A stretch of DNA of 64,000 nucleotides. Source: Vitrella brassicaformis CCMP3155 (Eukaryota > Protista > Chromerida). The stretch is from assembly GCA_001179505.1 (NCBI GenBank), contig CDMY01000341.1:1-64000 (forward strand). The letters run 5' to 3'. Position numbers and translations under genes: made by a program. Positions 3,268-61,568 of the stretch are shown here, piece after piece (position 1 is the first letter of the stretch; every line of letters starts with the position of its first letter). The notes beneath the pieces were generated by a model. The model worked only from the letters and a program-made list of their open reading frames with translations. It made no database searches and had not been told where the DNA came from.

Positions 3268-5175
3268 ATGCTTTTGTTCCCATCTATTCTGTCCCTTTCA
3301 GCCCTTTCCAGCAGCGCATTCGTGCAGCTACGGCAGCAAACAGGAACCTTGGGACGCTTTAAGGCCAGGCGAGTTTCTCCACTCATGACATCTCGCCCGC
3401 TGGAGCTGTGGCTGGACGCACGAGCTGACAAACAAATCGGCAAGCAAAGCTATCCATTCAACAGAGTGCTGTACGCTGGGCACACAGCCATCCCTGAGTT
3501 GAGAGATGAGGACCTCATGGAGATGGATGGAGTGCTGAGGAAGGGAATCAATGAGGTGGGCAAGGTGGTCAAGATCATTCAGCCCGAGGACCAGAACGAG
3601 GGCAAGAAGCTCATTGGATCTGTGGAATGGATTGTGATTGACTGCGACGGTACGACTGGACACAAAGCGCACATGCGGGCGCGCACAGGAGCAAAACACA
3701 CATGGGTGACTTTGTGTGCGTGTAGATTGGGTGCAGATCCCTGGCGAGAACATGGTGGCGGCAAGCCACCAGACGCCCACGCGGATCTGTGCCGTCGTCA
3801 CGGACGCCTCGCAGATACAGGGGCTGGCCTTCTCACTGCAGGTGGGTCAGCCGCTCATCGGGGTGTGTTTAGGCACATGTCTTTTCATGGGCTGTTTGCT
3901 TTGCACATGTATACTGTAGTTGGGTGTGGATGCGCTGCTGCTGCCGCCAGACCAGGCCATGTGGAAGGCCGCTTTGGAGGCGCGCACCACGAGGGGCCAG
4001 GGCACCCAGCCCACCAACGCAGAGGCATCTCAGCCCTCTGCAAAGGTATTGGACGAGGCGTGCATGCTGATGGGGAATGGTTTGATTCATTGTTTTCATT
4101 CACTCAGGGGGTCGCCAGTGCGCACAGCGGGCTTCGGTTTGCTCGTGTGGTGTCTGTGAGTGATGGAGGTGTCGGGGATCGTGTCTGCCTGGACCTCATC
4201 CAGAACATGCGGCACGGCGAGGGCGCTCTGGTAGGCTACGTACTTGGGCTCTCACCACCCACTACCACCAGAGGGCCATCTTAAGCTTATGTCCGTCTGC
4301 GTGCAGGTGGGCTCCAGTGCAATGAGGCTGGCCTTCGTGCATGCTGAGACCATCCCTGCGGGGTTCGTGCCGGCCCGACCGTTTCGCATCAATGCCGGCC
4401 CCGTGCACGCCTACTGCCTGATGGGCGACGGCAAATCCACCAAGTACCTGTCTGAAATACAGGTGGGCGGGGCGGCTGTGAGTGACGTCAGCCAGCAACA
4501 AGGACGGCCGTGTGTGCTGCTGCATGGTGTGTGCATGAGTGTGTGTCAGGCCGGCGATGAGATAGCGGTGGTCAGTCTGCCTGCAGGGGCCGACGGGAGT
4601 GTCACGTCGCGTGCAGTGTCGGTCGGAAGATGCAAAGTCGAGCGGCGGCCGGTGCTCAAGGTCATCTTCCAGGTGACTGCCTGCCTGCCTGCCTGCCTGC
4701 GTACCCAGGGCAAGCACTTCAGTGACCTGCTTTGCTGTCATTCTGTGCGTGCATGGCCGTGTCAGATTGAATCAGCAGATGGCACGGCAGCCCCATCAGC
4801 CGGCAACGTGAGACGAGAAACGACACGATGGAGATCCATTTGTGACTCCTCCATGTGTTCCCTCTGTTGTCCTCCTTCTCTGCAGGTGTTTCTGCAGCAG
4901 GCCGAGACCGTGAGGCTCCTGAAAAGGGACGAGGGCACTGAGAGGCCCTCGGGCGAGCACGCCTTCCTGCTTCCTGGTGGAGGTGAGGGTGAGTCGGTGT
5001 GTTGGGTGGTGCCGGTCTCCATCACAAGCCTCAAAGCAGGTAGCTGCAGACAGCATGGTCGGTGCTCCAGTCGATGTGTGTATGTGCTCTTCCAGGCGAC
5101 AGCATATTGGTTCGAGGACAGTCAGTGGGGACGCATCTGGGGCAGCCCATCGATGCCAAAGTGGTCGAGATTTAG
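3268..5175 (+). CDS. 3-dehydroquinate synthase type II (archaeal-type DHQS family), probably plastid-targeted, multi-exon
   Basis: Motifs QIPGENMVAA, VGDRVCLDLIQNMRHGEGALVGS, FVHAETIPAGFVPARPFRINAGPVHAY, KYLSEI, GRCKVERRP, FLQQAETVRL and PVSITSLKAGDSILVRGQSVGTHLG...VVEI* (TAG at 5173-5175). Leader MLLFPSILSLSALSSSAFV. Confidence 0.88.
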
Positions 5176-5633
5176 CGTGTCTCATTCATCAGATTCCGTA
5201 TCATTCATGCCTTCCCTGTTTTGTTCCAAAAATCGATGGAGGGCAATGCAGAACAGACAGATGCCTGACTGTGTGCCTGCCCTTGCTCTTGCTCTGTCTG
5301 CATTGCCTTCCTTGGATCTTGCTGCCTGGGGGAAAGCAATTTGTGTGAGTGTGTGGATGGACAAACAAATGGTCGGACGGATGGGTGGATGCGACGGGCT
5401 CACTGACTGACTAGCTGATCGGTGCTGCTTTGCATGTGACTGTGTGCGTGTACAAAATAATCTGCTTGTATGCTTCCATCTGAGTGAGAGACAGGCCGAC
5501 ACACAAGGCAGGCAGCACGGACAGCGATTGTCATCTGTAATTACAATGAGATATGATGCACACACATATCCGTCTCGATCCGACGCATGAATCACGCACC
5601 CGTGCCACTGTCCCCCTCTATCCCTTCCCTCCC

Positions 5634-7995
5634 TCATGCCAGCTTGTATGCCTCCAGCTCATCAATGTCGAAGTGCCATCCCTTCACTGACACAGGCAGG
5701 AGCACTCGGTCATCGTCATCACTGTAGTCGCTGAGCCTGACATCCGGCCACTCCCACTGGCGCCACTCGTCGGGCTGCTCGTCCTCCAGCATGGCTCCTT
5801 GGCACCGCTGCATGGTCTCGTCGCTGGCTGCTGCTGGGGCGCCGATCTGGGCGGCCTGACGGATACCGAAGCTGAAGCATGCCGTGTGGAGGACGGCCGT
5901 CAGCTCAGACTCAGCCGATGAGAAATCGATGAACTCGGTGACTCTCTCCTGCACACACGGAGAGAGAGACCATTGGCTACCATGACTCCCTTGCTCATTC
6001 AGGTGGGTACCCACCTGTGTGCCCGCGATGCAGATGATGTCGTGCTGGCCGATGTAGCCCACGTGTGGGTGGCTGTCTGTCCCCTGCAGCTTGAAGCCGA
6101 AGGCTCTCGTGTCGGGGCGGCTCTTGGCCGTGCCGGTGACCTCGATGGGCCCCTCGATGATGACGGCGAAGAGCTCATTGCTGCCGGCCACCTTGGAGAT
6201 GAGCAGCAGGGGGGAGTGGCCCTTGACGGCATCGAAGAAATCCAACCACCTCCAACCATTCACAGTCGCCCTGACACGACACACACACGCATCAAGACAC
6301 AGAGGCATGGTGAGAGAGTGCCGGCATGCTCACATCTGTCTGGCCTGCCCTTCTCACTTGTATATGCGCATGACCGGGTCGCCCACACACGACGGGATCT
6401 GTGCCGGTGCGGGCAGCCAACCGTCACACCACTGCCGCATCTTGAGCAGGTGCTCGGTGGTCAGCAGGCCGTCAGCCGGTCCCAAATGGCGATCGCTATC
6501 CAAACCGTACCTGACACACACAACACACACACCCACGGAGAGAGAGAGAGAGAGAGAGAGCAGCCGTCGGGTCATTGTGTGGTGAGCACTCTTTTCGCTG
6601 TTACATGGTGAGTGCGTGTCGGTATTTGTTGATGGCCAGATCACCCATCGCCCCCCGCACGTCAGCCGCTGTGATGGTTGCCCCCTTCATGTGGGCACGA
6701 GATACGACATCGACAATGCGCCGGACATGCTCGATGGGCGCACGAACGGTAGGGCCGTACCTGACACGACAGACAGACAGACAGACAGACAGGGGATACA
6801 AGCGAGCTCTCAAAAGGCCCAAGTCTGTGCAGGCGCACCTGATGAATCTGTTGGCAAAGGTAGAGTCGTCGCCCAGCGATTTCGCTACACCTATCGTCAC
6901 CGTCACCGTGGATCCCGACACACTCGCTGACACCAACTGAAGAGGGCAACCACAACCACAATATGCAGTCAGTGCATCTCCTCTGATCCCCTTCCCTCAC
7001 TGTGTCCAGCTCACCGTATCGTCCTCCACATTGCCCGTCTTGAGTAGTGGCTTGATGGCATCCAGCCGCTGCTCATGTGCGGCCTTCTCCTCCAGCGCCT
7101 TCTTCGTCAGCCTGTGCAGCTCCGCCGTCAGCCTCAGCTGAGCCGCGGCGGGCTGCCCGGCATCCTGCTGCTGGTCCGTGGCTGGGTCGGCAGCGGGGAG
7201 GAAGGCGTCGCCACCGGGCCGCCGCTTGTGTGAGGGGTCCCACAACAGCAGCTCAACCCAGTACCTGACGACACACATCATCGGCTGCATTGGACCGTCA
7301 CGTGTGTGTGGTGGGCCTGGTGCTCACGTGAATGGCGTGTCGTGTTGCTTGGCCGGGGGGATTGCAATGTTGTCCACCTGCTCCTCCTCATACATAATCA
7401 GATTCATCACCAGCCTGCATCCCGCCCAACACACACGCACACACACAACACACACGTGTGTGTGAGAGAGATGACATGATGAATGAATCCATCACTGAGC
7501 CCTCCTGACTTGACCAGGTGAATGCAGGTGGCCAGATCGGCAAAAAATGCGATCGTTCTCGTCATGGATAAACGCAGCGTCAAATTTGCCACCGAAGAGG
7601 GTGGCGAGCACCGAGTTCTTGACCGCACAGAGAGTCGATCGCTGGACCCGCACCTGCTCGCCGCTCACATTCAACTCCAACACATCCTTCATCAACTCTT
7701 CCTGCACACTACAACACACACAAACACACGCGCGATGAATGCATGTCCTCGACTGCCTTTCCGCTTTCTGGTCCATCTCGCTCACCATTGGTTTGTTTGG
7801 CGCTGCAGCAGACCCGCCCAAGGCTCTTTGGCGCTCCTCCAGCTCCTCCAGCATGGCTTGCAGCGCGTCGGTGACGCTTCGGCTGTACTGGATGGACTGA
7901 TGCAGCGCGCCGAGGGAGGCGCTCTCACCAACAGCGCCGCCATCAGGACACCTGCGTTTCTCGCCAACTGCTGCAGCAGCAGCTGATGCAGCCAT
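5634..7995 (-). CDS. BTB/POZ (KCTD-type) + C-terminal TLDc-like protein, copy 1; apparent -1 frameshift at 7542-7547
   Basis: BTB: VLELNVSGEQVRVQRSTLCAVKNSVLATLFGGKF...DENDRIF. TLDc-like: RIYKATVNGWRWLDFFDAVKGHSPLLLI...WHFDIDELEAYKLA*. Compared with copy 2, one base is missing in a T6 run, which is either a pseudogene lesion or a homopolymer error. Confidence 0.75.
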
Positions 7996-9021
7996 CTATC
8001 GCAGGAGAAATCACAATGCCCTACAGTGACAATGCCAATGCATTCATCGCATTTCTCCTGAACGCTCCGCTCAAACTGTTTCACGCTCGGATTTGTTTCA
8101 CCCTGTGAGCTCGCCCTTCTGCTTCTCTTCTTTTCCGCCGTTCTCCCCTCTTTCATGCTGCCGTCAGCTGCCTGGACGTCCTGATCTGCCTGGACGTCGA
8201 AGTTCGACGCCATGCCGCCCCTCCGCATTTTCTCTCTTTCGCTGTCAGGGCAGCGTGAACACCCCAGCACAGCTGCAAGGTGGCAGGTGTGCATGTGCAC
8301 GGCAGAGAGCATGCACACAAGGTGGCAGGTGTGCATGTGACCGGATTCTGTGCTGCTTAGGTGGTGCTGATCAGCGTCGAGGGTGTTGTCAAAGGAGCAC
8401 AGCAGCGGCACGGCGGCAGCGGGCAATGAGACCGCCACACGACGTCAGATGGCAAGGTGAGACACGGCATGCAGGACAGGTGTGTGAGTGTCCCGCTTTC
8501 ACTTTCACGTGCATGTGCATGTGTGCGTTTTCAGATAACTGACTGGGTGCTACTCGTCCACAACCACAACGACACACATGCAAGGTACACACGACACACA
8601 GCCACAATGCAACACAGGACAATCCCATCCTGCCTCTCTTTCACCCTCATGAAGGTTCGTCCGGACGAGGCAAGTAGGTCGCATACCAAAGGACAGTGGT
8701 GCTGTGCTGCCGGAGTTGGCAGGTACGTACGTCAGGAAGCCAGATAGATGCACTCACTGGGCGTGGACGTGTTGTGTGGCTGCATGTGTTGTGTGCGTCT
8801 GTCTCTTCAGGCAGGTGTTGTAGGCGAGCCCTGGGGACCACCCTGCCATCCACTGAGATCTCCCTCGTCCACCCACTCACCCAAGGATCTTCTTCTCTGT
8901 CTAGCTAGAGTGAGTGTTGTGGTTTTTGCGTACTTACTGGTGCATGGCATGGTGGGGCTGTCCTGTCGGGGAGTGGCTGCCTGTCGCGTGTTTATACGAA
9001 TTCTTTCGGCTGTTGTGCTTT

Positions 9022-10798
9022 CCCTCCGCTCCGCTGTGTTGGCCGTCCGGGCGTCTGCTGCGGTGCTGGCGGAACAGTCCACAGGGTCTCGACGGCAATG
9101 CAGTATGTGCCGGTCAGGGTACTGCAGCGGAGGGAAGAGAGAGACGAGTGCTGGACTGTAGGCTACTGCACATTCCTGTCGTCATCTGACGGGCGGGCAC
9201 TGCACAGAGAGCGATGCTTCATTGAGTTGGGTTGGGTTGACATCCGATTTTTGTGGTGTGACTTCGTTGCCCACAGCTGAGTCCTATCGGTGAGATGGCG
9301 TCTTCGTCATGAGTGGTGCATTTTGCTTGGGTTCTGTATGCCTTGTGCTGTGCGTGACCCCCTCGTGCCCTCATGTACGGTCTCTGCGAAGTGCGTCTCA
9401 TTGCTGTGCGGGCAAACGCATAGCGATGACACGTGCTGTGCGGCGGCCTGACATGGGGCACGAGGGGGGCACCGTACCACGGCAAACAGTGAACACCCCA
9501 CCTCTATCCGTGAGTCTTCGCTTCACGTGGCAGAGGATGGGTGGATGCGTGTGTGAGCGCCAGGGCAGAAAAGCCGAGGGGTGTCTTTTCTGCCTCTCTC
9601 GAGTGGTGTGGTGTGGTTTATGTGTGTTTGCTGGTGCCTGTTGTGCCTGTCCGTCATTGTATGGTGTCTCCTGCGCTGTCCCTCCGCTGTGTTGGCCTGG
9701 CGGGCGCGTGCTGCAGTGCTGACGGGACATCACACACGGTCTCGACGGCAATCTTGCACGTGGCTGACAGGCCAATGCAGCGGAGGGAAGCGAGAGACGA
9801 GTGTCATTACGTCACTGCCTTCGCTTTCCACAGATGAGTGCCGCACCGCAGGCTAAGGCTATTCTGTTCGCTGGCTATTCTGTCTTCATCATCACTGGTA
9901 CATTATCTAGCTTGAGTCGCGTGTGTATGCTGCTGTGCGTGACCCCTCGTGCCCTTATGTGGGATAGCTGGGGGCGAACGTCTCATTGCTGTGCGGGCAA
10001 ACGCGCTGCAATGACACGTGCTCTCCAGCGGCCTGACATGGGGCGTGAGGACGGCAAAACGCCGCCTCGCTTCAAGTCAGACGTGGGCGCCAGGGCAGAA
10101 ACGCCGAGGGTGTGGGTGTCTTTTCTGTCTCTGCAGAGTGGTGTGGTCGGTGTGGTTTATGTGTGTCTGCTGGTGCCTGTCGTGTGTCTGGCGGTCATTG
10201 TATGCTGTCTGTCTGTCTGTCTGTTGTGCTGTCCCTCCGCTGTGTTGGCCTGGCGGGCGCGTGCTGCAGTGCTGACGGGACACCATACACCGTCTCGACG
10301 GCAATGCTTCACACGGCTGTCAGGCCAATGCAGCGGAGGGAAGCGAGAGACGAGTGCTGGAAGCCAGCTCATGATCAGCGCTTTCTCGAGAGCAGTCAGT
10401 GGCTGCTCCTCTATGGTGTGGCCACACGCATCAGTCCGTCCATGTGGGTGGGGGGGGTTTGGCGGTTCGTTGGCATGGTTGTCGGACTGTTTTCCGCGTG
10501 TGTGTGGTGTTGATGGGATGCGACCACTTTTGTAGTCATGTCTGGGTGGCCGGCTGAGTCGACAGAACCAGTCACCCACTCCATCAGGGAGGGATTTCAC
10601 ACACTTGTGGATTGGTGTGCTGTTGACTGGGTGGGGTGGGTGCATCAATCAGTGGTGCTAGGCTGTACTGTGTATCCTTTGTGGTGTGCGTGATCCACAT
10701 CATGCCCCCATGTCAGGCCTGGTTGGAACGCTTCATCGCTGTGCAGTCATTTGCACGGCTGTGACACGTGCCCGTCAGGGAAAGGACATGGGGCATGA
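9022..10798 (+). ncRNA. Candidate structured-RNA cluster: six alternating long hairpins (family T1 at 9022-9134, 9680-9787, 10233-10340; family T2 at 9358-9468, 9945-10050, 10700-10798)
   Basis: By manual pairing each unit folds into an extended stem-loop. T1 outer stem: ccctccgctgtgttggcctg / caggccaatgcagcggaggg, 20 bp with 2 G-U. T2 upper stem: tcattgctgtgcg-ggcaaa-cgcatagcgatga, 13 bp. Copies differ by compensatory or wobble changes. No known RNA family recognised and expression is unproven. Confidence 0.5.
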
Positions 10799-11542
10799 GA
10801 ATGGCACCGTACCACGGCCGACATGAGCGGCAAACAGTGGCCCGGCCTCTATTCGTCACTGTCGTGGGTTTTGCATCACAAAAGGTTCCGTTCATCACAG
10901 ACGAGTTTTGTAGTGATGGTTTGTGTGCTACGGTGTACTGCTGCGTGTACGTTCCTGCACTGCCTGAGATCGGACGGATCAGCTCAGTGTCTCTGTCTCT
11001 GTCTCTGGCGCATTCGAGCGCCTCCAGTCTGTCTGAGCACGTGGACCCAGCCGATCTACGATCGTTGTTTACAGCAATGCCTGTCGCCTGATAGTCGAGC
11101 GACTAGATGTGACAGACATACACAGATGTCCTGCTTGCTCTGTGCCTCACACGCTGTTTTGTTGGCCGCCGGCACGTAACGCGCCCATCTTGCTCATCCA
11201 TCCTGACGCAAGGGAAGAACGGACATTGTGGGAGTGACGGGCTCAGACAGAATCGCTGGTGTTGGGTATATAATGAGTGAAGACTGGATGCTGTGGCTGA
11301 ATGGCATGGCTGGCAGTATGTGCCGGCACAGTGAGCTGTGGGTTGTGAGGAGGAAGACCAACTTGTGACGAATGAAGCCATTCTGTCGATGTGTCTCCCT
11401 CCTCTGGCTCACAGCTAACGACGACAAAGGCCTAACTAACGACACCGCTCTCTGCATAACCACCCCCGCCCGCCTAGGCCTTGCTTGCCGACGCGACACC
11501 CTACCAGCCCACTCCAAACGCACAAGCATACTCACACTCACA

Positions 11543-14500
11543 TCAGTTCAAGTGTGAGGTGGAAGGCGGCCTCGAGAGAGCTCTACAGTCATTCAAATGC
11601 GGTACTGCAGAGCTCTTCGAATCCACCATCCAGGACACACTCGACCGACGTCGTGCACTGCTCTGCACACATCACCATGTATCATCCCTCATTGACACCT
11701 GCACACATCACACCCATGCCATGCCATGCCACCATGGATGAGAGAACAAGCGCTGACATCGGCGCCCTCTCCCCTCCCCAGCTCAGCCAGCTTACGTTGC
11801 ATGAGGAACTGCAGCTTGGCCACGATCTCCGCGCACTGCGTGGCTGTATCTGCTTCGTACTCGACCTCCAGCTGTCGATCGGCCACCTTGCCGCGGCCAC
11901 CCTGATCGCGGCCCTCGCCCCAGCCCCACGACGTCTTGCGGGACACGCCATCAGCCGACTCAGGCGACACGGCCCTCTGATGCACACACACGTACATCAA
12001 ACAAAGAGGGGGCATTGTACAATGGTGTCATCTTGGGTGTGTGTGTGCGGCTTTCTGTGACCTTTCTGTAAGTGATAGCGAAAGCGCGTGGTTTGTCTGG
12101 TATGCACTCAGCGGTGACGATGTCGCTGATGTGCCAATCGACCAGCGACGTCTCGGCCGCCGACCCCTCCGCTGCTGTCAGTGCTGCGGCAGCCGCAGGC
12201 ACGCTCTCTCCCCTCCGATTAGCTATGCGCCGAAACTGGATGATGGAACAGCAAAGCACCCACACAAAGATAATGAACAACGTCCCCTGTCTGTGTGCCT
12301 CGTTTACTCACTGACCAGTGGCCCCCAGAATCCTCCCCCTCTCCATCCAGCGCTTCGCTGAGGTGCGGGTGGCGGTGTGGTGGGCGGATGTGCCATGGCG
12401 AAGGGGTCTGCCGTGGTGGCGTCGGCCTGTGCGGGCGGCAGAGGGGAGTGGGCGCCGGATTGCGGTGGCGGCGGTGGGGGTGCGAAGGGTAATGCGGGCG
12501 AGGGCAGGAGGGGGCTGTTGGTGTTGGAGGGCGTCTGGGTGGTCGACATGACGAGGGGCGTCACCTTGTGATAAACACGGTTGCGGTCCACAACAAATAC
12601 CTACACAAAAGGAGAGAGGATGGTCCCATCGTCTGCCTGTCCGTCTGTCTGTCTGTCTGTCTGTTGCTTACACATGGTCTTGGCTTGGCTGCCGGTGCGG
12701 TGGCCGGCGTGGTGGGTCCGTTTGGCGGCGACAGCTGCAGCGACGGTGGGGGTGAGGTGCTGCGGACAGTGACATGCAGGTGGTACTCCGACGCGATGGA
12801 GGCCGTGTACTCATTGAACAGAAACATCGACAACGGAGGCCTGCACACACACACAGAGGTCAAACATGTGCCTTGCATCCCTCCGGGTGATCCGAGTGAT
12901 CTGTGTGGGTTAGTGTACTTACCTGACTTCCTTCCCAGCCAACTCAGCCTGAGCAGTGGACCTCTCTGTGCGGCGCGGTGCGGCCGACGACAGACATACA
13001 TACACGCCAGCCACAGCACAGTGAGTGACGACACGGCACCTGTCTGTCTCTCGCTCTGTCTCTGGCCTGCCTACGTTGTGGGCTGTCCTTCCTCACGAGC
13101 CGCAAGCTCCTGTCCTGCTGCGGGATGTCCTTGACCTGCCACCCCATCTGCAGACGCTGCGGGCGACCCATCACAACTCGCTGACACCACACACACCAAA
13201 GCACACCACAACAGCATGGCAGACCCATTCATCCATGCGAGCATCGACAGCTGCAAACCTCAAAGGCCATAGTGGCGGGTGTGAATGCCTCGTCCCTCTG
13301 CCGTGCCACGAGACTGAGCAGGTCGAACAGCCGCGACTCCTCGCTGATCTGCACCACTGTTCGGGGCTGCTGGTCTGCGGTTGGGGCGTCCGACCCGACG
13401 GCTGGCGTCTCTGCCGGAGGACCGATCACTGTCAACACCTGACAAACAAGTAGAGCAGACCGAGAAGGCTCTCTGTGTGTGTCTCTCCGACCGACCCACC
13501 CGTGTTTTGGAGCCGATGCTGAGGACGTCCGAGGCGCACCGGATCATGCCGCCCCCCTTGGCGGCCGCCGCCTCCTCCTCCCCCTCCCCATGTGGAATTG
13601 TTGCCCTCTGCCGCCGACCCCTGCCGCCCACCTGCTGGCCCGGTGTGGGCGAGCTGCTCTCCGCACCCTCCATCTCATCGCTGCTCGTCCGCACCTTGGG
13701 GTGGTACATGACGCTCAGACTGCCCCCTTGGCTCTGGATCCGGCGGTGACCCAGCAGGCCTTTGCCGTCACCACCAACCCAGGATTGCACACGGGGCGGC
13801 GGGGGGATGGGCGCCGGAGGTTGCGTCTGCGGCAGGTGTCTGCTGGCTGGCGTGGAGGGGCCGGGGGGTGGGGTGCCCAGCAGGAGATTGGGGTTGGACG
13901 CGAAGGTCACGCTGGCGTTTTTGGATTGACGGGGTCTCGGTTGGGCGGCGCCTGTGCTGGTGGGGGACGTGTCGGGCGACCGCGCTGACATGGCTCGACT
14001 GGACTGACGGTGACGCGGAAGACTCGCAGGTGTCGGGGCCTGACAACAGGCAGGCAGGCAGGCAGGCAGGTGTGTTGCGCCGTGTGTCCCCCTCTCTATG
14101 TTATGTATGTTTGTGTGATGGATGGCTGGCCACTGACCTCGAAAACAGGCTGGCTGATTGCTTTCTTCATGAGCTTCTCGTCGGACGACTTCCGGGCCCG
14201 CGCCTCTATCTCCAGCTCCGACACGCGCCGTGGCGACGCCATGACACTGGGAGGCGTCCTGGGTCCCGCCCAGCCCTTGACGCCACCCACGCCCCCGACC
14301 ATGGTCGGCCACTCTTCCTTCTGCTTCTCCTTGTCCTTCTCCTTCTCCTCCTTCCGCGCCTCCTTCTCGCTCCCCGTCGAGGATTTCCTCTCTGCCTCTT
14401 CCTCCTCCTCCTGGATGGCCGCCTCGGTCGGCAGGAAGCCCCCCGACCCTGCACGCGATCCGCGCCTTGTCAGGGGGAAAAGGGTAGATGGGGGCGGCCC

Positions 14501-36025: not shown

Positions 36026-36885
36026 CTGACCGACCAATCGACCGGGGGCCTTTCCCCAAGGTGTGTGCTGTGTGCAGCCAGCCCGCTGTTTGTGTTTAGC
36101 GGTACTGCTCGAAGGCATCGTGACAGAGACGATGAAGTGTCTGTCATTACACCTTCTAGCAGCCCGTCTGAACACAGAGAGTGGCGTGGCGCGCTGAGAA
36201 AAAATGTGTATGGCCAAGAAACCCTAACACTTGGACTGATGGACGTGTCCCGTCTCTATGTGAGTGTGAGAATGTTTGTGCGTTTGGAGTGAGTGGGTTG
36301 GTGCGTCGTGTCGGCAAGCAAGGCCTAGGCGGGTGGGGGTGGTTAATGCAGAGAGTGGTGTCGTTAGTTAGGCCTTTGTCGTCGTTAGCTGTGAGCCAGA
36401 GGAGACACATCGACCGACTGACTTCATTCGTCACAAATTGGTCTTCCTCACAACGCACTCACTGTGCCGGCACACACTGCCAGCCATTCGAATTCATCTG
36501 CGTATGCCTCATCTAGTCGCTCGACTATCAGGCGACTATCAGGCGACAGGCATTGCAATCATTGCTGTAAAGAACAATCGGAGATCCGAAGGGTTCACGT
36601 GCTCAGACAGACTTGAGATGCTCGAATGCGCCAGAGACAGAGACAGAGACACTGAGCTGATCCGTCCGATCTCAGGCAGTGCAGGAATAATGCACACGCA
36701 GCACTACACCGGCGGATGGGGGGCAGACGTGTCCCTCCCTCCCTCACTCCGTAGCACGCAAACCATCACTACAAAACTCGTCTGATGGACGGAACGTTTT
36801 GTGATGCAAAACCCACGACAGTGAGGAATAGAGGCCGGGCCGGCCATTGTTTGCCGCTCATGTCGGCCGTGGTACGGTGCCATCC

Positions 36886-38637
36886 TCATGCCCCATGTCC
36901 TTTCCCTGACGGGCACGTGTCACAGCCGTGCAAATGACTGCACAGCGATGAAGCGTTCCAACCAGGCCTGACATGGGGGCATGATGTGGATCACGCACAC
37001 CACAAAGGATACACAGTACAGCCTAGCACCACTGATTGATGCACCCACCCCACCCAGTCAACAGCACACCAATCCACAAGTGTGTGAAATCCCTCCCTGA
37101 TGGAGTGCATGGCTGGCTCTGTCTGTGTGAGTGGGTGGCTGGTTCTGTCGACTCAGCCGGCCAGCCAGACATGACTACAAAAGTGGTCGCATCCCACCAA
37201 CGCCACACACACGCGGAAAACAGTCCGACAACCATGCCCACGAACCGCCAAACCCCCACACAACACGGACGGACTGATGCGTGTGGCCACAGGATACAGA
37301 GAGAGACCTGACTGCTCTCGAGAAAGCGCTGATGATGAGCTGGCTTCCAGCACTCGTCTCTCGCTTCCTTCCACTGCATTGGCCTGCCACGCACGCACTT
37401 CATTGCCGTTGAGACGGTGTATGGTGTCCCGTCAGCACTGCAGCACGCGCCAGCCAGGCCAACACAGCGGAGGGACAGCACAGAGCAGACAGACAGACAG
37501 ACAGACAGCCACCATGCAATGACCGACAGACACACGAAAGGCACCAGCAGACACACATGAAGCACACCCACACCACTCTGCAGAAAAGACCGCTCTGACT
37601 GAAAGCGAAGAGTTACGAAAAGATGTGAGGCGGCGTTTTGCCGTCCTCACGCCCCATGTCAGGCCGCTGCAGAGCACGTGCCATTGCAGCGCCTTTGCCC
37701 GCACAGCAATGAGACGTACACCCAGGGCTGATGACATAAGGGCATGAGGGGTCACGCACAGCAGCATACACACGCGACTCAAGCTAGTGTACCACTGCTG
37801 ACGAAGACAGAATAGCCAGCGAACAACCGATAGGAATGTGTGGAAAGCGAAGGCAGTGACGTAGTCGCACTCGTCTCTCTCTTTCCCCCGCTGCAGTTGC
37901 CTGTCATGCACGTGCTATATTGCCGTCGAGACGGTGTGTGATGCCCCGTCAGCACTGCAGCACGCGCATGGAAGGCCAACACAGCGGAGGAAAAGCGCAG
38001 CAGACACCATACAATGACGACAGACACAACAGGCGCCAGCAAACACACATAATCCACACCCACATCACTCGAGAGAGGCAGAAAGACACCGCTCGGCTTT
38101 TCTGCCCTGGCGCTCACACATGCATCCACCCACGTCTGCGTGAAGCGAATCTACAAATTGAGGTGGGGTGTTCACTGATTGCCGTGGCACGGCGCCACCC
38201 TCATGCCCCATGTCAGGCCGCCGCACAGCACGTGTCATCGCTATGCGTTTGCCCGCACAGCAATGAATCGTACCGAGCTGAGACCACATGAGGGCACGGG
38301 GGGGGACTCGCAGCACAAGGCATACGCAACCCAAGCAAAATGCACCACTGATGACGAAGACGCTATCTCACCGATGGAAGTCATCTGTGGGCAACGAAGC
38401 CATACCACAAAAATCGGATGGCAACCCAACTCAATGAAGTATCGCCCTCTGTGCAGTGCCCGCCCGTCAGATGACGACAGGAATGTGCCGTAGCCTACAG
38501 GGACGTGATCGCACTCTCGCCTCTCGCTTCCCTCCGCTGCAGTCACCTGCCAGGCACATACCACATTGCCGTCGAGACGGTGTGGACTGTCCCAGCAGCA
38601 CTGCAGCACACGCCCGGAAGACCAACACAGCGGAGGG
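36886..38637 (-). ncRNA. Second copy of the six-hairpin cluster (T2 36886-36984, T1 37367-37474, T2 37645-37749, T1 37883-37993, T2 38199-38302, T1 38530-38637)
   Basis: Same stems as in 9022-10798 on the minus strand. Two T1 units are exactly 108 nt. There are compensatory changes relative to the copy-1 counterparts. Confidence 0.5.
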
Positions 38638-39620
38638 ACAGCACAACAGCCGAAAGAATTCGTATAAACACGCGACAGGCAGCCACTCCCCCCCGACAGG
38701 ACAGCCCCACCATGCCACGCACCACTAAGTACGCAAAAACCACAACACTCTAGCTAAGCTAGACAGAGAAACAGATCCTTGGGTGAGTAGGTGGACGAGG
38801 GAGATCTCGGTGGAGGGCAGGGTGGTCCCCAGGGCTCGCCTACAACACCTGCCTGAAGAGACAGACGCACACAACACAGCCACACAACACGTCCACGCCC
38901 AGTGAGTGCATCTATCTGGCTTCCTGACGTACCTGCCAACTCCGGCAGCACAGCACCACTGTCTGTCGTTTGGTATGCGACCTACTTGCCTCGTCCGGCC
39001 GAACCTGCATGAGGGGAAGTGAAAGAGAGGACAGGATGGGATTGTCCTGTGTTGCGTTGCGGCTGTGTGTCGTGTGTACCTTGCGTGGCGGGATAAATGG
39101 ACGAGTAGCTCCCAGTCAATCATCTGACAACGCGCACATGCACATGCATGTGAAAGCGGAACGCTCACACACCTGACCTGCACGCCGTGTCTCACCTTGC
39201 CATCTGACGTCGTGTGGCGGTCTCATTGCCACTGCCGCCGTGCCACTGCTGTGCTCCTCTCACAACACCCTTGACACTGATCAGCACCACCTAAGCAGCA
39301 CAGAATCCGGTCACATGCACACCTGCCACCTTGTTCAGATGCTCTCTGCCGTGCACATGCACCATTCAGCTACCTTGAAGTCGTGTGGGGTGTTCACGCT
39401 GCCCTGACAGCGAAAGAGAGAAAATGCGGAGGGGCGGCATGGCGTCGAAGGGACAGGCCAGTGGGCAGATCAGGACGTCCAGGCAGCTGACGGCAGCAGG
39501 AAAGAGGGTAGATCGCAGAAGGGCGAAACAAATCCGAGCGTGAAACAGTTTGAGCGGAGCATTTGGAGAGGATGAATGCATTGGCATTGTGATTTCTCCT
39601 GCGATAGCATTGTTCAGAAG

Positions 39621-44760: not shown

Positions 44761-45089
44761 CGTCAGATCTTACGGGCGGGATGGGCGAGGCTGCTGCAGA
44801 CACACATACACCAGGCAAGAGAAGCGGGATGACGAAGCTAGGGGGACCTGCCTGGGCTGCCTTCTCACCTGTATGAGCATCACAGGCGGGCATCTTGGCG
44901 CCACAGTGCGTGGGCGCCGCTACCACCTGGACACGCCACCTGGACACGCCACCGTGCGGAGGAGTGGCATGGCGTCGAAGGGACAAGCCGATGGGCAGAT
45001 CGGCCATGCAGGCAGAGCGGCCGATGGGTGCCATGAGTTCCATGGGCTGAGTTACACGGGGGCGCGAGAGGCCAGGTGAATAGTTGCCG

Positions 45090-46066
45090 ATGGCCCAGGA
45101 TCAGGAAGGTATGCGTCACTTCCCATAATGCTTTCGGCGTCTCCTCCTGCAGCGGTTTCTCTTGCAGATATCGATATCGCTGGTGGACCAAGTAGTGATG
45201 GTGACGCGCCTTCGCCTGTCGTTGGCGGCAACGATGCCGCTGGCAGCCCGACTGACAATACATGTAGAGGAACCGCCGCTGTCTTTGAGGTATGACGAGC
45301 ATCTTCATCCATGAAAACACACGCAAACTGCACAGATGCCTCAAGCTTTGTTTCCTCACTTTCTTATCCATCGGATTCCTGCAGGCCATTCGGATGCAAG
45401 GGTGGTCCGCCATTGCTTTGGTAAGCATCCATCGACAGACAAAGGCATCACTCGCCCTACACAGTGTCGTTTCCCTTCCGCCCTGTGTGCAGCCTCGAGA
45501 GCTTCACGTTGGCGTCTTTGCGTTCGTCAATCCCGTGTGGTGCCTAAAGCCGCCCCTGCCCTCCCCACTCAGCGGGGCAGTCCTTCAATACCACACCGAG
45601 CTTGTCATCGACTGCCGCAGCACACAAGAGAGAACCTTCTGGCAGCGGATGACGTCGCAGACGGCGTACGAGCTCGGCAAACAGATGATCAACCTCAAGT
45701 GTCTCATCCATCGCTACCCACGAACACCTGATGGAGCGGAGGGCCTTCCTGCTGGCGGCAACTATTTCTCACCTCGATGGTGCCGTGGGACCGTGATCGG
45801 GCTAGTGGAGGGGCATGTGCAGGGACGGCGAGCGGCGCGCGTGAAGGAGGGGCCGGGGACCACGATGGCAGAGGGATCGCTCAAGTCGTTGACCTTCGAG
45901 TCCGTGGTGATTCCACACAGCGGACGACACGAGATGAACCAGCTGAACATCACCAACTCTGAGCCTTTTCAAGTTGCTGTCGCCCCATCCCACCCCATCA
46001 ACCTCCCGGCCCTCACTGAGGTCAACGGCGTCACCCACGGCCACTCTGTCATCGATGGGCGGGGAT
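45090..46066 (+). CDS. Paralog A of an expanded unknown-domain (+TLDc-like) family; truncated by assembly gap
   Basis: Exon 1 ATGGCCCAGGATCAGGAAG|gt, exon 2 DIDIAGGPSS..., main exon RELHVGVFAFVNPVWCLKPPLPSPLSGAVLQYHTELVIDC...WCRGTVIGLVEGH. Nearly identical to paralog B. Confidence 0.6.
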
Positions 46067-48490: not shown

Positions 48491-48829
48491 TGGAGGTGCC
48501 GCATCCGAAGGGCACAGACGTCACGCCGACGAGCCGACTCTCTGGTGTGGAGAACGCCGGTGTGGCAGACGACGACACTGCCGCTGCTGCTGCTGCCAGG
48601 GAGAGAGCGGCGACGAACGTGAACGTCGGGAGGCGCATGGAAGGACCATAGATCAGCAGCAGCGGGATGAATCCTCAAACTTGGTGCTTACAGATCTTCG
48701 AGGACGTCACCGTCCTGGATGGTCACATTAATGTAGGGATTCTTCGACCTCATTCTCGAGCTGCGCCGTTGATGAGTTACACGGCGATGGGAAATAGGTT
48801 GAATTGAGAGCCCCGGCTAGAGCTTCACG

Positions 48830-50419
48830 ATGGCCCAGGATCAGGCAGGTATGCGTCACTTCCCAACAGTGCTTTTGGTTTCTCCTCCTGCAGCGGTTTT
48901 CTTTGCAGATATCGATATCGCTGGTGGACCAAGTAGTGATGGTGACGCGCCTTCGCCTGTCGTTGGCGGCAACGATGCCGCTGGCAGCCCGACTGACAAT
49001 ACATGTAGAGGAACCGCCGCTGTCTTTGAGGTATGACGAGCATCTTCATCCATGAAAACACACGCAAACTGCACAGATGCCTCAAGCTTTGTTTCCTCAC
49101 TTTCTTATCCATCGGATTCCTGCAGGCCATTCGGATGCAAGGGTGGTCCGCCATTGCTTTGGTAAGCATCCATCGACAGACAAAGGCATCACTCGCCCTA
49201 CACAGTGTCGTTTCCCTTCCGCCCTGTGTGCAGCCTCGAGAGCTTCACGTTGGCGTCTTTGCGTTCGTCAATCCCGTGTGGTGCCTAAAGCCGCCCCTGC
49301 CCTCCCCACTCAGCGGGGCAGTCCTTCAATACCACACCGAGCTTGTCATCGACTGCCGCAGCACACAAGAGAGAACCTTCTGGCAGCGGATGACGTCGCA
49401 GACGGCGTACGAGCTCGGCAAACAGATGATCAACCTCAAGTGTCTCATCCATCGCTACCCACGAACACCTGATGGAGCGGAGGGCCTTCCTGCTGGCGGC
49501 AACTATTTCTCACCTCGATGGTGCCGTGGGACCGTGATCGGGCTAGTGGAGGGGCATGTGCAGGGACGGCGAGCGGCGCGCGTGAAGGAGGGGCCGGGGA
49601 CCACGATGGCAGAGGGATCGCTCAAGTCGTTGACCTTCGAGTCCGTGGTGATTCCACACAGCGGACGACACGAGATGAACCAGCTGAACATCACCAACTC
49701 TGAGCCTTTTCAAGTTGCTGTCGCCCCATCCCACCCCATCAACCTCCCGGCCCTCACTGAGGTCAACGGCGTCACCCACCCGGTGAGACTCATCGATGGG
49801 CGGGGATGGACAACACCGGCTGTCGAGCGTGTCTCTGCACCTCATACGCCCGCTGAGGTTTTGGACATCCGGCCGTTCGTCGCCACGACGAGGTCCCTCG
49901 CCGAGCTGTGGTCGGCGTCTTCGATGATGCCCTTTCATCTGGCTGAGCTGCTGGAGTCCGTCCCTGTGGGACAGCGGGGGCAGCCGGGGCCTCTCGTGAA
50001 CCTTCGGGTGATACCTACCATCAAGCTCTACGGCATCGAGTCAACCGATGCCTGCAGGGACGGCCTCCAAGACCTGCAGGCAAGAACGGAAGATTGGGCA
50101 CAGAAAGCGTGCGAAAGAAAGGCATCGGCGTTGTCTCACCTCGATTGTGCTCTGGTTTCAGAAGTGTTTGGTGCATCGAGGCTGCTCGAAGGCCTTCGAC
50201 TTTCTGCGCATAGAGGTGCATCGCAGCGACTGCCTTGACCTGCTGCTCAGCAACTTCGCGACATTCAAGGCCCTGGCCTCGCTCATCGACACGACCTGCT
50301 CGCCATCGGCCAAGGTCGACTGCAGCATCATCTCCCCTGACGGCGTGTTGCGAGACATCTCTCTCCCCCATCTGCTGGCCTACACACATTTCGACTTTAC
50401 CAACCTGCCCAGCTGCAGC
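48830..50419 (+). CDS. Paralog B of the expanded unknown-domain family; truncated by assembly gap
   Basis: Same exon structure as A (MAQDQA|DIDIAGG...). Continues through IKLYGIESTDACRDGLQDLQ|GC-AG intron|KCLVHRGCSKAF up to the gap. Confidence 0.65.
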
Positions 50420-50719: not shown

Positions 50720-53700
50720 GATATCGATATCGCTGGTGGACCAAGTAGTGATGGTGACGCGCCTTCGCCTGTCGTTGGCGGCAACGATGCCGCTGGCAGC
50801 CCGACTGACAATACATGTAGAGGAACCGCCGCTGTCTTTGAGGTATGACGAGCATCATCCATGAAAACACATGCAAACTGCACAGATGCCTCAAGCGTTG
50901 TTTCCTCACTTTCTTATCCATTGGATTCCTGCAGGCCATTCGGATGCAGGGATGGTCCGGGATTGCCATGGTAAGCATCCATCGACAGACAAAGGCATGA
51001 CTGACTCGACGACGGAGGGCGTTGCGTCCCTTGTTTGCCATCTGTGTGTGTGCAGCCTCGAGAGCTTCACGTCGGCGTCTTTGCGTTTGTCAATCCCGTG
51101 TGGTGTCTCAAGCCGCCCCTGCCCTCCCCACTCAGCGGTGCCGTCCTGCAGCACTACACCGAGCTCGTCATTGACTGCAGCGACACACGGCAGAGAACAT
51201 TCTGGCAGCAAATGACCCTGCAGACGGCATATGAACTCGGCAAACAGATGATCAACCTCAAGTGTCTCATCCATCGCTATCCACGGACACCTGCCGGGGC
51301 AGCTGGTAACTTCTATATTGCGTCTCGATGGTGCCGTGGGACCGTGATCGGGCTAGTGGAGGGTCATACGGCGGGACGACGGGCGGCGAGAGAGAAGGAG
51401 GGGCCGGGGACCACGATGGCCGACGGATAGCTCAAGTCATTGACCTTCGAGTCCGTGGTGCTTCGGCGCAGCGGACGACACGAGATGGACCAGTTGGGCG
51501 CCATCAACTCTGCCCCTTCTGCTGCCGCCCCATCCCATGCCATCAACCTCCCAGTCCTCACTGATGTCAACGGCGTCACTTGTGGCCACTCTGTCATCGA
51601 TGGGCGGGGATGGGCAACGCCAGCTGTCGAGCGTGTCTCTGTACCAAATACGGTGACCGAGATCGCGGACATCCGTCCGTTTGTCGCCACGACGAGATCC
51701 CTCGCCAAGCTGAGGGCGGCGCTGCGATGATGCCCTTTCATCTGGCTGAGCTGCTGGAGTCCGTCCCTGTGGGGCAGCGAGGGAGTCCAGGGCCCTTTGC
51801 GAAGCTTCGAGTGATTCCTGCCATCAAGCTGTACGGCATCGAGTCGACCGATGCCTGTAGAGACGGCCTCCAGGATTTACAGGCAAGATCGGAAGATTGG
51901 GCACAGAAAGCAGGCGAGAAAGGCATTGACATGTTCTCGTCTCGATTGTGCTCTGGTTCTCTGGTTTCAGAAGTGTTTGGTGCATAGAGGCTGTTCGAAG
52001 GCGTTCGACTCCCTGCGCATAGAGGTGCATCGCAGCGACTGCCTTGGCCTGCTACTCAGCAACTTCGCGACATTCAAGGCCCTCGCCTCGCTCATCGACA
52101 CGACCTGCTCGCCATCAGCCAAGGTCGACTGCTGCATCATCTCCCCTGCCGGCGTGTGGCGAGACATCTCCCTCTCCCTCCTGCTGGCCTACACCCGGTT
52201 CGACTTCACCAAGCTGCCCACGTGCAGCCTCCCACTCGTCAATGCGCTCTTGACTGCGTACAACGTGCGCCTCGACAGCTCACACAGCCACATCGACTGC
52301 CCAAAATTCGGGACCAGTGGCCCAGGACTGAGAGGCGCATGCCACTACGTCTGGAGGGTCACGCAAGACCAGCTGGATGGAGCAACCAGCGACATCGGCA
52401 GGGAGAGGATGAATGAGCTCGTCTTCGAGTCCGGTTGGTACCGGGATGAGGGCTGCAGCATATCCATAGAGTGTGCGGAGGGTTTCGCCCCTGCCGCTGA
52501 TGCCGTGCCACCTGAGCCTCCCGAGCTCAAAGCCCTCAACAGGACAAGAGTGGAGCGGGTGAAGACTCTGATCGTCAACCATCGCATCGGGCTGGGGTTG
52601 GCCAAGGCGATCCTGAGCAAGGGCCCGCATCTCACCGAGCTGCAGCTGACCGACATGGCGCCGACGGACGTGCCAGACCTGCTCTCACTCAGGGTGCCGA
52701 AGCAGCTCCTGCTCCACTCTTTGTGGGCAGAGGGTGATCGGCCGCTGGGTGTCGTGCCCTTTGACGTGCGATTCCAGCAGCTCAGGGGACTGACGGCCGG
52801 GGGTGGCGTCGCCCTGCAGCTTGCGGCCGCCCTGAGGCGCCACGTCCCATCGCTGGATGTGCTCGCCGTGGCCGGCAGCGAGATAGACGCGCTCCAGGTG
52901 CTCGTGGTAGGGGGCGTAGGGGCCGTCGCCCAGCTGTCTTTGGGATTCGTGCATGAGGGCCGCCACGAGTTCATCAGGGCTGCCGACGAGAGGGAGGGCA
53001 TCACGCTCGGCGATCACAGGGACCAACTGCCCCACATCGACAGCCTTGTCATGTACCTAGACGGTAAGTGGCGAAGAGATGGGGATACATTCACTCGCTG
53101 TATCTTTGTATGATGTCTCATGGTTTTCAGTGCCTTCTGCTGATGTTGCCGACCCGGGCGCCTTCATTCTGTCGAGCGTCTGGTCGGTCCTCGAGATCGA
53201 GTCCATCTCACGGCTGAAAGTCGTCCTGCCCCAGCACTCCCATGTGGATGAGCTCAAGGCAGCAATTGTCCGGCGATTTGGGCCTGGGCGGATGGTGCAC
53301 GGGCAGGTCCATCGAGAGTATGGGTACCTGGGTCTTTACCTCACAGCCAATGACATCGCAACTGTAAGGCCGGGGAGAGAAATGAGCTTAGAATTACACG
53401 GCGAATGCACCGCCTGTGTCGCTTTCCAATCTGTCCATTAGATGCGCAGAGCGGCGTTTGCCCACTCGTCGACGGCCGACCGGCTCGAGGCACTGATGCG
53501 CATAGAACGCCCGCATCAGAGGCTCGCGATGATCACCAATCTGGCGGACACCGTGAAGCGGCTGTCGCATTGCCTGCCCTCCCTCCCCCCCGATGTCTCA
53601 GCCGAGGCACTCGCCAGTGACTTCGCCGGCCGCGTGCGTGCTGCTGCGCCCATGACTGTGGTCGACCCCCCGTATGCGCCTCGGCGGCTGAAGGCGCCAC

Positions 53701-54759: not shown

Positions 54760-57700
54760 TCACCCGGCCGCCCCGCCTACGGCCCCCGGAAGTGAAAATC
54801 GCAGCACCTCTACTTCATCGGCAACCATGAAGTCCAACGAAGTTGAGGTATCAGAGGACCATATGACGTCCACCCGGCATTGCCCTGCCGCTGCCGCTGC
54901 CGCTTCCGGGTCGACTGCCCACAGTCTTAGCCCCGTCGCCCCTTGCGAAAGTCTAGTCGCCAATGTCTGTGTCTGTCCTTGCGATAGGACAGACACCGAC
55001 GAGCCCACGATCAGCTTTGCGATTTGGTCCACGCCATTGGGCTCAATGTCCCTTCGCAGCACAGAGACACACTGCGGCGTCGTTGAGGGTGACTGGAAGG
55101 TGGGCAGGGAGAAGCCAGCTATCTTGAAATTGAGGCCAGCCACCTCATAGTCGTTGGAGGCGCGCGCACTTGGTAGCTGAGGGGGCGGCAGGACGCTGGC
55201 GTCGACGAAGAAGCCGTGGATGTCTCCATCGGCCCGCACGAGGAAGAGCAGGCAGCTCGCATCGCCCACACGATTGAGCATGTCAGTGTACGCAAACCCG
55301 TGCACAGTGGCCCTGTAGTCAATGAAGCACGCCAAGGAGAGGAGAACAAGAGAAGAGCATCATGGGCTGAGGTAATCGATGGTGTATTTTGGCTCTCTTA
55401 CTTGTAGAGCAGCTCAATGCCTGTCATCTGTGTGCCCGTCTTCTGCAGTACGGCCATCAGCTGACTGGCGGAGGCGATCACAGAGGGGCTGGGGATGCAC
55501 TGCCCATCGCCATGCAGCCGCATCATGGGCTCCATCGCCAGGCCGTGTCTCTCCATCGCCGCCATGAGTGGTGCCTTCAGCCGTCGGGGCGCATACGGGG
55601 GGTCGACCACAGTCATGGGCGCAGCAGCACGCAGGCGGCCGGCGAAGTCGATGGCGAGCGCATCGGCTGCGATGTTGGCATCGTGTGAGGGAAGATACTG
55701 TTTGAGCATTGACGAGAGGCGCTTCACGGTAACCGCAAGATCGGCGATTATTGCAAGCCTCCGGTGGGGGGCTCCTGCTGGCAGAAGTACCTCGAGCAGG
55801 TTAGCGGCCGACGAGTGGACAAAGACCGCCATGCGCAACTGATCAGCAGAGACACAATGAAGGAATGCAGATAGATAGTACTTTCTAAATGAGCACCACG
55901 ACAAACATCATTGCGGCCTTTCCCTTACTGCTGCGATGTGTTCGCTCGTCATGAAGAGATGCAGTACTCCGTCCACTGAATGCACATTCCCCTCTATCTC
56001 GGTGCGGCCTCTGAAGCGTCTCTCAATTGCTTTGTTGAGAGCATCCAGATGGGATCGATAAAGCAGGACCACCGTCAGCGTGGAGACCGACTCAATCTCG
56101 AGGACCGACCAGATGCTCGACAGAATGAAGGCACCGGGATCGACAACATAGGCCGATGGCACTGAGGCAGGGAGACACGGAGACACGGAGCCGTAACCTG
56201 ATCAGCGAGTGGACATTTTCTTCATTCTTTCGCTACTTACCGTCTAGTTTCATGACCAGCTTCTTGATGTGGGGCATTTGGTCCTTGTGATCGCCCAGTG
56301 TGATGCCCTCTCTCTCGTCCTCGGCCTTGATGAACTCACGGCGAGTCTCAGACACATAGCCCAGATGCAGCTGGTCGATCGTCCCACCACCTCCATTGAC
56401 GAGAGCCTGGCGCGCCCCTCCTTCGCTGCCGCAGATGCTGAAGTCACGGATGGCTGACATGTGGGGACGTGTGGCTGCCGCAAAAAGTGCAACAGCGTCT
56501 CCCTTGACGAGGAGCGTCTTCACCTTCTGGAGACTCTGTCGAATACGCAGTGGAATACTGATCTCGCACCCTTCCTCCTCTTGACGCAACTGCTCGACAG
56601 TGAGCCTTTCGGGCATCCTCCACACACAGACGCACGCCAGGAGGCTCAATACGTCCGATGAAAACATGTCCATCACCCGCAAATTCTCGAGTTGTGCACC
56701 ACTTCGCAAAAGCATCTTTGCCACCCCCATGCCGATGCGGCTCTTGACGGTCAAACTTTTCACTCGCACGAGTAAGTCAGCTCTTAGGGCTTTGAACTCG
56801 GGAGGCTCTGGTGGGAGGGCGTCAGTTGGCGGGGTCCAGCCCTCCTCGCACTCGATGGACATGCTGAATCCACTTTTCGGAGCGCACCCTCCAAGCGACA
56901 GCGTGTTCACCAAGTTCTTGTCGATAGGCCCGTTGGATGGTCGCGCCACTTGGTTCTGCGTGACGGTCCAGACGTAGCGGTATCCGGGCCGGACACCGCC
57001 TTGATCAATACTTGTGACAGAAGGACAATCAGGGTCCTCCGGCTGTGGCTCAATTTCCACATTTTAGAGTTTCTGCAAGATGCTGAGCAGCTGCGGACCG
57101 CAGCCGGGGACTTTGTCGAACCGGGTGTAGGAAACTAGATTGTTTAGTGGAATGTCTCGCACCTCGTCAGCACAGCGCAGAAAACGGCAACAGACCTTGC
57201 CCGATGCCGCGCACGTCGTATTGATGAATGTGGCCAGCGCCTTGAATGTCGCAGAATCGTTGAGGATCAGCGAATGGCAGTCGCTGCGCCGCATGCTTAG
57301 GTCTAGGTAAGTGATGCACTTCGAGCAGCCACGATCCACCAAACACTTCTACAGCCAAAGCACATTCGAGGAAAGAGCGTATTTGTGCGATGACCCCTTT
57401 CCCGAGCCCCTTTCCGTGCCGTTCTTTCCTTTCTGTGCCACCTGCAGGTCCCTGAAACCGTCTCTGATCATATCGGTGGATTCGATCTCGTAGACTTTGA
57501 TGCGGAGAATCACTCGAAGGTTCGCGAGAGGCCCTGGACTCCCCTGCTGGCCCGCTGGGATGGACTGCAGCAACTCAGCCAGCTGCAAGGGCATCATTTC
57601 CATATTCTGAGGCATTTCTAGCTGGACTAGGGACTGTGTTGTGGCGATGAACGCCCTGATATGCGCCATGTCGGTGGATACTGAGAACACGCGCTGCAGA

Positions 57701-61481: not shown

Positions 61482-61509
61482 GGGGTGAGGGGAGGGGGAT
61501 GTGGAAGGG

Positions 61510-61568
61510 CAGAGGGGCAACGCCCCTCTGGAGGGGCAACGCCCCTCTGGAGGGGCAACGCCCCTCTG
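61510..61568. repeat. Three tandem 19-bp palindromic units (gaggggcaacgcccctctg)
   Basis: Units at 61512, 61531 and 61550, each a gaggggc-aac-gcccctc stem-loop, about 30 nt after the RNase III stop. Confidence 0.9.

Follow-up and report, generated by a model that had tools for sequence, protein, structure and literature searches.

Organization of the hairpin arrays

The analysed window is a 64,000-nucleotide (nt) stretch of contig CDMY01000341.1 from Vitrella brassicaformis CCMP3155, and the subject of this study is an array of long hairpins located in it, 1-3 kb upstream of the start of a gene of the BTB_2 type. Six long inverted repeats, belonging to two families designated T1 and T2, follow one another in the order T1-T2-T1-T2-T1-T2 on the plus strand at 9016-10820 (array A), within three degenerate tandem units. 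The first-pass annotation, made from the letters of the sequence only, had placed the hairpins in strict alternation in this region, and our analysis confirmed both the order and the positions (Table 1). The starts of successive units are spaced by 653 and 553 nt when measured on T1 and by 585 and 750 nt when measured on T2. Besides the hairpins, the spacers between the units can also be aligned (block families D3-D8), and the repeat unit is therefore the entire two-hairpin module. The short conserved flanks described earlier were both present, GTGCGTGA preceding T2 and AAG(C/A)GAGAGACGAGTG following T1.

Comparison of the window with itself (blastn) revealed an inverted segmental duplication pairing 5393-11128 with 42175-36495 at ~85% identity, with a second block pairing 11306-11543 with 36487-36258 at 88% identity. 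An inverted second copy of all six hairpins (array B, 36864-38648, minus strand) is located 27 kb from array A, and the two arrays together account for the 12 hairpins counted in the first-pass annotation. Covariance models for T1 (R1) and T2 (R2), each built from the six copies of its family, were searched across the 64 kb along with simple sequence patterns. Both approaches returned exactly six T1 and six T2 elements plus their antisense echoes, and no T1 or T2 copy outside the two arrays. Dispersed copies, which had been named beforehand as the mark of a miniature inverted-repeat transposable element (MITE) or foldback transposon, did not appear in the 64 kb, as the covariance models matched array members alone. 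No T1 match was found in viral contigs. A shared origin of T1 and T2 was considered and dropped, since local alignments of arm against arm scored no better than shuffles and no sequence relation was detectable. A further candidate, a small hairpin in the spacers that lead from T2 to T1 (9553-9605 and 10083-10140), was rejected as well, its z-scores of -1.3 and -0.1 being no better than those of shuffles.

Table 1. Coordinates and folding parameters of the hairpins, and positions of associated features in the window. Scores are for the covariance model R1 (T1) or R2 (T2); dG is the folding free energy.
Feature	Position	Strand	Core	Model score (bits)	dG (kcal/mol)	z	Remarks
T1a copy A	9016-9150	+	9022-9136	R1 119	-57.2	-2.6	
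T2a copy A	9340-9485	+	9354-9472	R2 151	-87.9	-11.5	
T1b copy A	9669-9803	+	9679-9789	R1 149.5	-79.1	-10.0	
T2b copy A	9925-10070	+	9939-10054	R2 134	-64.7	-5.7	
T1c copy A	10222-10356	+	10232-10342	R1 147.8	-81.9	-10.7	
T2c copy A	10676-10820	+	10690-10800	R2 135	-55.3	-4.6	
T1a copy B	38514-38648	-		R1 136	-64.1	-4.9	
T2a copy B	38179-38321	-		R2 143	-70.2	-6.8	
T1b copy B	37868-38002	-		R1 144.9	-68.7	-8.2	
T2b copy B	37625-37769	-		R2 127.7	-64.0	-6.0	
T1c copy B	37351-37485	-		R1 137.2	-68.6	-8.4	
T2c copy B	36864-37008	-		R2 138.8	-55.3	-4.3	
Duplication copy A	5393-11543						BTB/TLDc-type gene on - strand and upstream array; blastn self-comparison
Duplication copy B	36258-42175						Gene on + strand, array on - strand; blastn self-comparison and public annotation
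G+T-rich, A-poor strand-skew domain	8700-11300	+					Inferred extent of + strand transcription unit
72-aa multi-exon gene model	38840-39440 (L006 8265-8865)	-					No domain; ATG to TAG; public annotation

Folding and strand specificity

All 12 hairpins fold into stem-loops of 43-50 bp with a dG between -55 and -88 kcal/mol, in agreement with the imperfect stems of ~45-50 bp that had been proposed. The energies refer to the sense strand of the array, and the z-scores were obtained from 200 dinucleotide shuffles per hairpin (copy A). Eleven of the 12 hairpins were clearly more stable than the shuffled controls, with z-scores from -4.3 to -11.5 (-4.3 to -8.4 for the hairpins of copy B on the minus strand); the exception was T1a of copy A, which was weak (z = -2.6). 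This hairpin carries a 5-nt tandem duplication, CTCCG, in its 5' arm (9029-9043), which none of the other five T1 copies has. The weakest fold thus coincides with the duplication, and T1a of copy A may be a decaying copy. When a 120-nt fold was slid along the sequence, the hairpins stood out as isolated peaks. The consensus stems ran into the adjoining sequence; the T1 consensus covers 135 nt with 51 pairs, and the T2 consensus covers 145 nt with 48 pairs. As modelled from the consensus, the stems probably extend into what had been called flanks, reaching about 50-55 bp.

The folding was strongly strand-dependent. In all 12 hairpins, the antisense strand folded 6-24 kcal/mol worse than the sense strand, i.e., the strand directed away from the BTB gene. 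The sense structures contain 4-13 G·U pairs each and the antisense structures 0-5. Alignment of the 5' arms with the reverse-complemented 3' arms over the 12 hairpins yielded 412 Watson-Crick columns, 83 G·T and 17 A·C columns, and 78 transversion mismatches. The first-pass annotation had observed that the non-Watson-Crick pairs are mostly G-U on this strand, and the ratio of 83:17 bears this out (binomial p about 1e-11, with the caveat that the hairpins compared are mutually dependent copies); copy A by itself gives 38:6. The strand-symmetric decay of a DNA palindrome should produce G·T and A·C mismatches in equal numbers. The observed imbalance therefore points to pairing as an RNA property of one strand.

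Conservation of the fold between copies

Between copies A and B, identity (gaps counted) was 88.4% in the hairpins and 81.0% in the spacers (p = 2.5e-5). The conservation of the hairpins is comparable to that of open reading frame (ORF) segments of the neighbouring gene, which ranges from 82% to 95%. Preservation of the fold was evaluated by placing the observed types of substitution at random positions with the same source base and refolding the result (n = 300), the compared pairs of copies differing by 9-37 substitutions. For T1b of copies A and B, separated by 15 substitutions, the observed dG values were -68.7 and -79.1 kcal/mol and the simulated means -46.6 and -52.0 kcal/mol; none of the 300 simulations was as stable in either direction. 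The corresponding counts were 3/300 and 0/300 for T1c (14 substitutions) and 7/300 in each direction for T2b (13 substitutions). In the deeper, unit-to-unit comparisons, which involve 19-37 substitutions, between 0 and 10 of 300 simulations reached the observed stability. Two of the 22 directional tests were not significant, namely T1a from B to A (44/300) and T2a from A to B (79/300).

The consensus structures had 92% of their cells paired. In T1, 18 pairs showed one-sided variation with pairing kept through G·U. In T2, six pairs and 11 cells carried double changes, and neither the number of such cells nor the covariation score was attained in any of 500 shuffles. Variation was also distributed unevenly within individual hairpins. 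In T2a, a run of 63 nt comprising the loop and the 3' arm (9398-9460) is identical in copy B, and the 5' arm shows ~10 differences; in T1c, copies A and B differ at one position in the 5' arm and loop and at 13 positions in the 3' arm. Taken with the strand-specific folding, these data make it likely that a structure is under selection at the RNA level on the sense strand of the array, its ability to fold having been retained across the three tandem units and the two segmental copies.

A separate observation concerns the end of the array. A run of 223 nt (10577-10799 versus 36885-37107) is 100% identical between copies that otherwise share ~85% identity, and its end coincides precisely with that of T2c on the 3' side. 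The run is likely to reflect either recent gene conversion or a constraint of unusual strength.

Coding potential, known RNA families and possible signs of transcription

The earlier statement that no protein model explains the region was upheld. A 244-aa ORF at 9801-10535, spanning T2b and T1c, was rejected as a coding sequence, as a search of 5.8 billion proteins produced no homologue and copy B does not retain the frame. In the public annotation, array B is likewise free of any gene model (36026-38839). A search of Rfam 15, whose families include snoRNAs, snRNAs, Y RNAs, vault RNAs and known miRNAs, returned no match in the window at either gathering or permissive thresholds, consistent with the initial failure to recognise a known RNA family; the best sub-threshold match was MIR4387 (19.8 bits, E = 1.4; gathering score, 84). 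Small nucleolar RNA boxes, and RNA polymerase III A and B boxes with T-run terminators, were looked for by eye and set aside, because the matches were only partial and not conserved.

Array A lies inside a domain of strand skew in which the GC skew ranges from +0.03 to +0.24 and the AT skew from -0.07 to -0.40, most strongly at about 8700-10900, with flips at ~8700 and ~11300. The spacers have a G+T content of 0.64 and an A content of 0.14, and the sense-strand introns of the neighbouring gene have a G+T content of 0.58. This match in composition would point to transcription of the plus strand. The 72-aa gene model of the public annotation lies on the array-sense strand of copy B, in the gap that separates array B from the start of the BTB gene and immediately upstream of the hairpins. 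Its ATG and last exon are kept in copy A, at about 8225-8824 (plus strand). The model may correspond to the 5' portion of a transcript of the array, and it may itself be a spurious coding sequence on the primary transcript of the array.

A proposed hairpin-RNA cluster and its alternatives

We put the probability at roughly one half that the locus is a polycistronic cluster of sense-strand hairpin RNAs, acting as precursors of the microRNA (miRNA) or hairpin small interfering RNA (siRNA) kind. Each array would then be a non-coding gene cluster read away from the BTB/TLDc gene, on the plus strand in copy A and on the minus strand in copy B. Transcription would start at 8200-8900, in a region common to the BTB promoter, and proceed divergently from the BTB gene, and the resulting transcript or transcripts would bear six imperfect stem-loops of 45-55 bp from two unrelated, alternating families. 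The stems would serve as substrates for a Dicer-type RNase III and give rise to miRNA-like or hairpin-siRNA-like small RNAs. Enzymes of this type naturally act on duplexes of 45-55 bp with small bulges. The likeliest mature products would be the locally invariant segments, namely the 5' arm of T1 in its middle and upper portions and the 3' arm of T2, while the opposite arms would be free to vary as long as pairing holds, often via G·U.

Several observations weigh against this interpretation. The structured-RNA reading of the first-pass annotation stands as far as a strand-specific fold preserved through divergence is concerned, but the compensatory covariation is weak, being modest in T2 and absent in T1, where two pairs carry double changes and 182 of 500 shuffles scored as high. 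The power of the covariation analysis is low, with six sequences per family that form three near-duplicate pairs. The asymmetry between whole arms was not significant in the variable columns (16/50 versus 21/50, and 28/54 versus 22/53). A regional mutational bias toward G and T on the plus strand, in keeping with the G+T-rich composition of the whole 8700-11300 domain, may add to the G·U excess, and the stems are longer than those of typical animal and plant pre-miRNAs. The window yielded no convincing target: 21-mers with no more than three mismatches occurred in about the number expected by chance, and the best duplex windows were not unique.

The expression searches belong on the same side of the balance. 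A 24-base pattern that matches all six T2 copies was scanned against metagenome and transcriptome contigs, and it found only four unrelated GC-rich chance matches, which is a weak negative; the lack of any called ORF from any assembly matching the array is another. The scanned collection does include transcripts of V. brassicaformis, since one contig (L001) matches 58921-63588 at 99-100% identity and lacks two short introns. It follows that a stable, polyadenylated transcript with T2 was not assembled there. Such an absence would be expected if the precursors were processed quickly. The Logan contigs carrying the neighbouring genes are unspliced genomic DNA and are uninformative on expression.

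The strand-specific G·U pairing and the preserved fold also fit a structured non-coding RNA or RNA element other than a small-RNA precursor, for example a divergent upstream transcript. Its stems could act as sites for double-stranded-RNA-binding proteins, as processing, termination or stability elements, or in cis regulation of the BTB gene. The co-duplication of the array with that gene, the conservation of the flanks adjacent to the stems and the failure to find target sites in the window are in keeping with such a role. Near-continuous duplexes of 45-55 bp with small bulges are, in turn, what Dicer-type enzymes cut, and nothing comparable is present in Rfam; we are not aware of any long perfect hairpins that are arranged as a family in alternating arrays and serve a different role. 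We hold this alternative to be rather unlikely.

We likewise give only a minor chance to a neutral origin, in which a tandem repeat of two foldback or MITE-like palindromes expanded through unequal crossing-over and was later carried along in the segmental duplication, the hairpins owing their survival solely to the youth of the copies or to gene conversion. Such an origin would account for tandem units that include alignable spacers, for the 223 nt of perfect identity, which suggest gene conversion, for hairpins that are only modestly more conserved than the spacers, and for the missing covariation in T1. It is harder to reconcile with arms that are only 74-76% Watson-Crick complementary as DNA and depend for their fold on the G·U pairs of one strand, since DNA palindromes should decay symmetrically, or with 9-37 substitutions per pair positioned so that the fold survives. 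Copies beyond the arrays were absent from the 64 kb and from viral contigs, and no target-site duplications were evident in the flank alignments. The same dependence on G·U implies that the structures are formed as RNA rather than as DNA cruciforms, and it makes an untranscribed, DNA-level element upstream of the BTB gene, whether a cruciform or a set of protein-binding repeats, extremely improbable. An upstream location 1-3 kb from the BTB start, together with the co-duplication of array and gene, would suit a DNA element, but G·T-dependent pairing with strong strand asymmetry makes for poor cruciforms, and elements of 110-140 nt with conserved stems are not short motifs.

Comparison with known hairpin-RNA systems

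Chromerids are the closest free-living relatives of the apicomplexan parasites, and V. brassicaformis is photosynthetic. RNA silencing has been kept in some apicomplexans, such as Toxoplasma, and lost in others, such as Plasmodium. Our literature search found no paper that deals with Dicer, Argonaute or small RNAs in either Vitrella or Chromera. In Toxoplasma gondii, Dicer and Argonaute occur together with multi-member miRNA families derived from intergenic or intronic fold-backs, some of them in one locus (Braun et al. 2010, PMC2877743); MIR-60 and MIR-4 have eight members each, and miR-15 and miR-49a have a common locus (PMC2877743). The hairpins described here resemble the Toxoplasma miRNA genes in belonging to the same wider lineage of apicomplexans and chromerids, in their fold-back form in intergenic or intronic DNA, in forming lineage-specific, multi-member families without homology to plant or animal miRNAs, and in bringing two families together at one locus, as Toxoplasma sometimes does with two different miRNAs. 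They differ in showing no sequence similarity, as judged solely by the absent Rfam matches, in their longer stems (about 45-55 bp), and in the strict alternation of two families in duplicated tandem units. For the Toxoplasma miRNAs, expression and Argonaute loading have been demonstrated, whereas the Vitrella arrays are known here from their sequence.

In plants and green algae, polycistronic miRNA clusters and long-hairpin precursors of miRNAs or siRNAs, including the DCL3-dependent hairpins of Chlamydomonas (PMC4817775), are similar in having several imperfect stem-loops of the same strand within a few hundred nucleotides, stems long enough for more than one phased duplex, and paralogous hairpins produced by tandem duplication. 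The A-B-A-B-A-B alternation of two unrelated families is unusual in comparison with these clusters; the alternation is strict because the two-hairpin unit was duplicated. Hairpin-RNA loci that yield endogenous siRNAs exist in animals and share the clustered long stem-loops of the Vitrella arrays. MITEs and foldback transposons are of similar size (about 100-150 bp) and equally palindromic. Unlike them, the Vitrella hairpins have arms that pair through one-strand G·U, evident target-site duplications and dispersed copies are missing from the 64 kb, and each hairpin holds a fixed place inside a larger tandem unit. It is plausible, and partly supported, that the array belongs with such clustered hairpin precursors. 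If validated, such a cluster would provide the first miRNA-like genes of the chromerid lineage, and its 12 paralogous precursors in two diverged copies would offer a handle on the birth, duplication and retention of genes of this kind.

An RNase III gene and candidate target sites

One gene with an RNase III domain is present in the window. It is expressed and extends over 58921-63588 on the plus strand, with an ORF at 59442-61481 and a product of 638-679 aa in which a single RNase III domain is detectable. Its best matches among solved structures are to the RNase IIIb domain of Dicer, and the similarity is weak (E = 0.002). The protein could be Dicer-like, Drosha-like or an organellar RNase III.

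The 5' untranslated region (5' UTR) of this gene contains, in sense orientation, a 13-mer (59141-59153) that matches the T1c 3' arm exactly and, after a gap of 8 nt, a 15-mer (59162-59176) that does the same for the T1 5' arm. The pair was present in none of 300 shuffle sets, by a statistic chosen post hoc, and the 15-mer alone occurred in 38% of shuffles. The duplex energies predicted at 59141-59176 are in the top 1% and are not unique. By these matches, the 5' UTR of the RNase III gene, 48 kb downstream of the array, is a possible candidate target, which would suggest an autoregulatory loop. The regulation of plant DCL1 by miR162 is a loop of this type. The broader proposition is that Vitrella encodes a class of G·U-rich hairpin RNA genes of ~110-140 nt, organized in alternating two-family tandem arrays and yielding miRNA-like RNAs, with the RNase III gene as a possible target. 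In this full form, we consider it quite improbable.

Neighbouring genes and other features of the window

The BTB_2-type gene of copy A is encoded on the minus strand, with exons at about 5627-7995 as deduced from the spliced transcript of a paralogue (L007) and a likely start at 7995. A combined BTB_2 and TLDc architecture is seen in a homologue (P0003). The gene of copy B lies on the plus strand and its product is P0076, whose locus, L006, corresponds to 30576-51972 of the window; the public annotation breaks the gene up into separate models of 204 and 337 aa. Decay of this gene was considered and is not demonstrated, as its frameshift falls in an intron according to L007, and the split public models were the sole hint of disruption. 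An environmental contig (L008; ENA ERZ893784 k147_2854373) consists of unspliced genomic DNA and shares 72-75% identity with both BTB/TLDc copies across their C-terminal exons and introns. The contig represents either a further paralogue or a relative of Vitrella in an environmental sample.

A gene-sized repeat family with at least four copies, 71-98% identical and in both direct and inverted orientation, was found at 45088-46066, 48828-49807 and 50720-52228 and, inverted, at 57115-58389. One public model in this region encodes a 720-aa protein with a weak TLDc match. Two adjacent ORFs on the plus strand (3268-5410) match 3-dehydroquinate synthase II of the archaeal type (DHQS and DHQS_2nd), which is an unusual enzyme type for a eukaryote.

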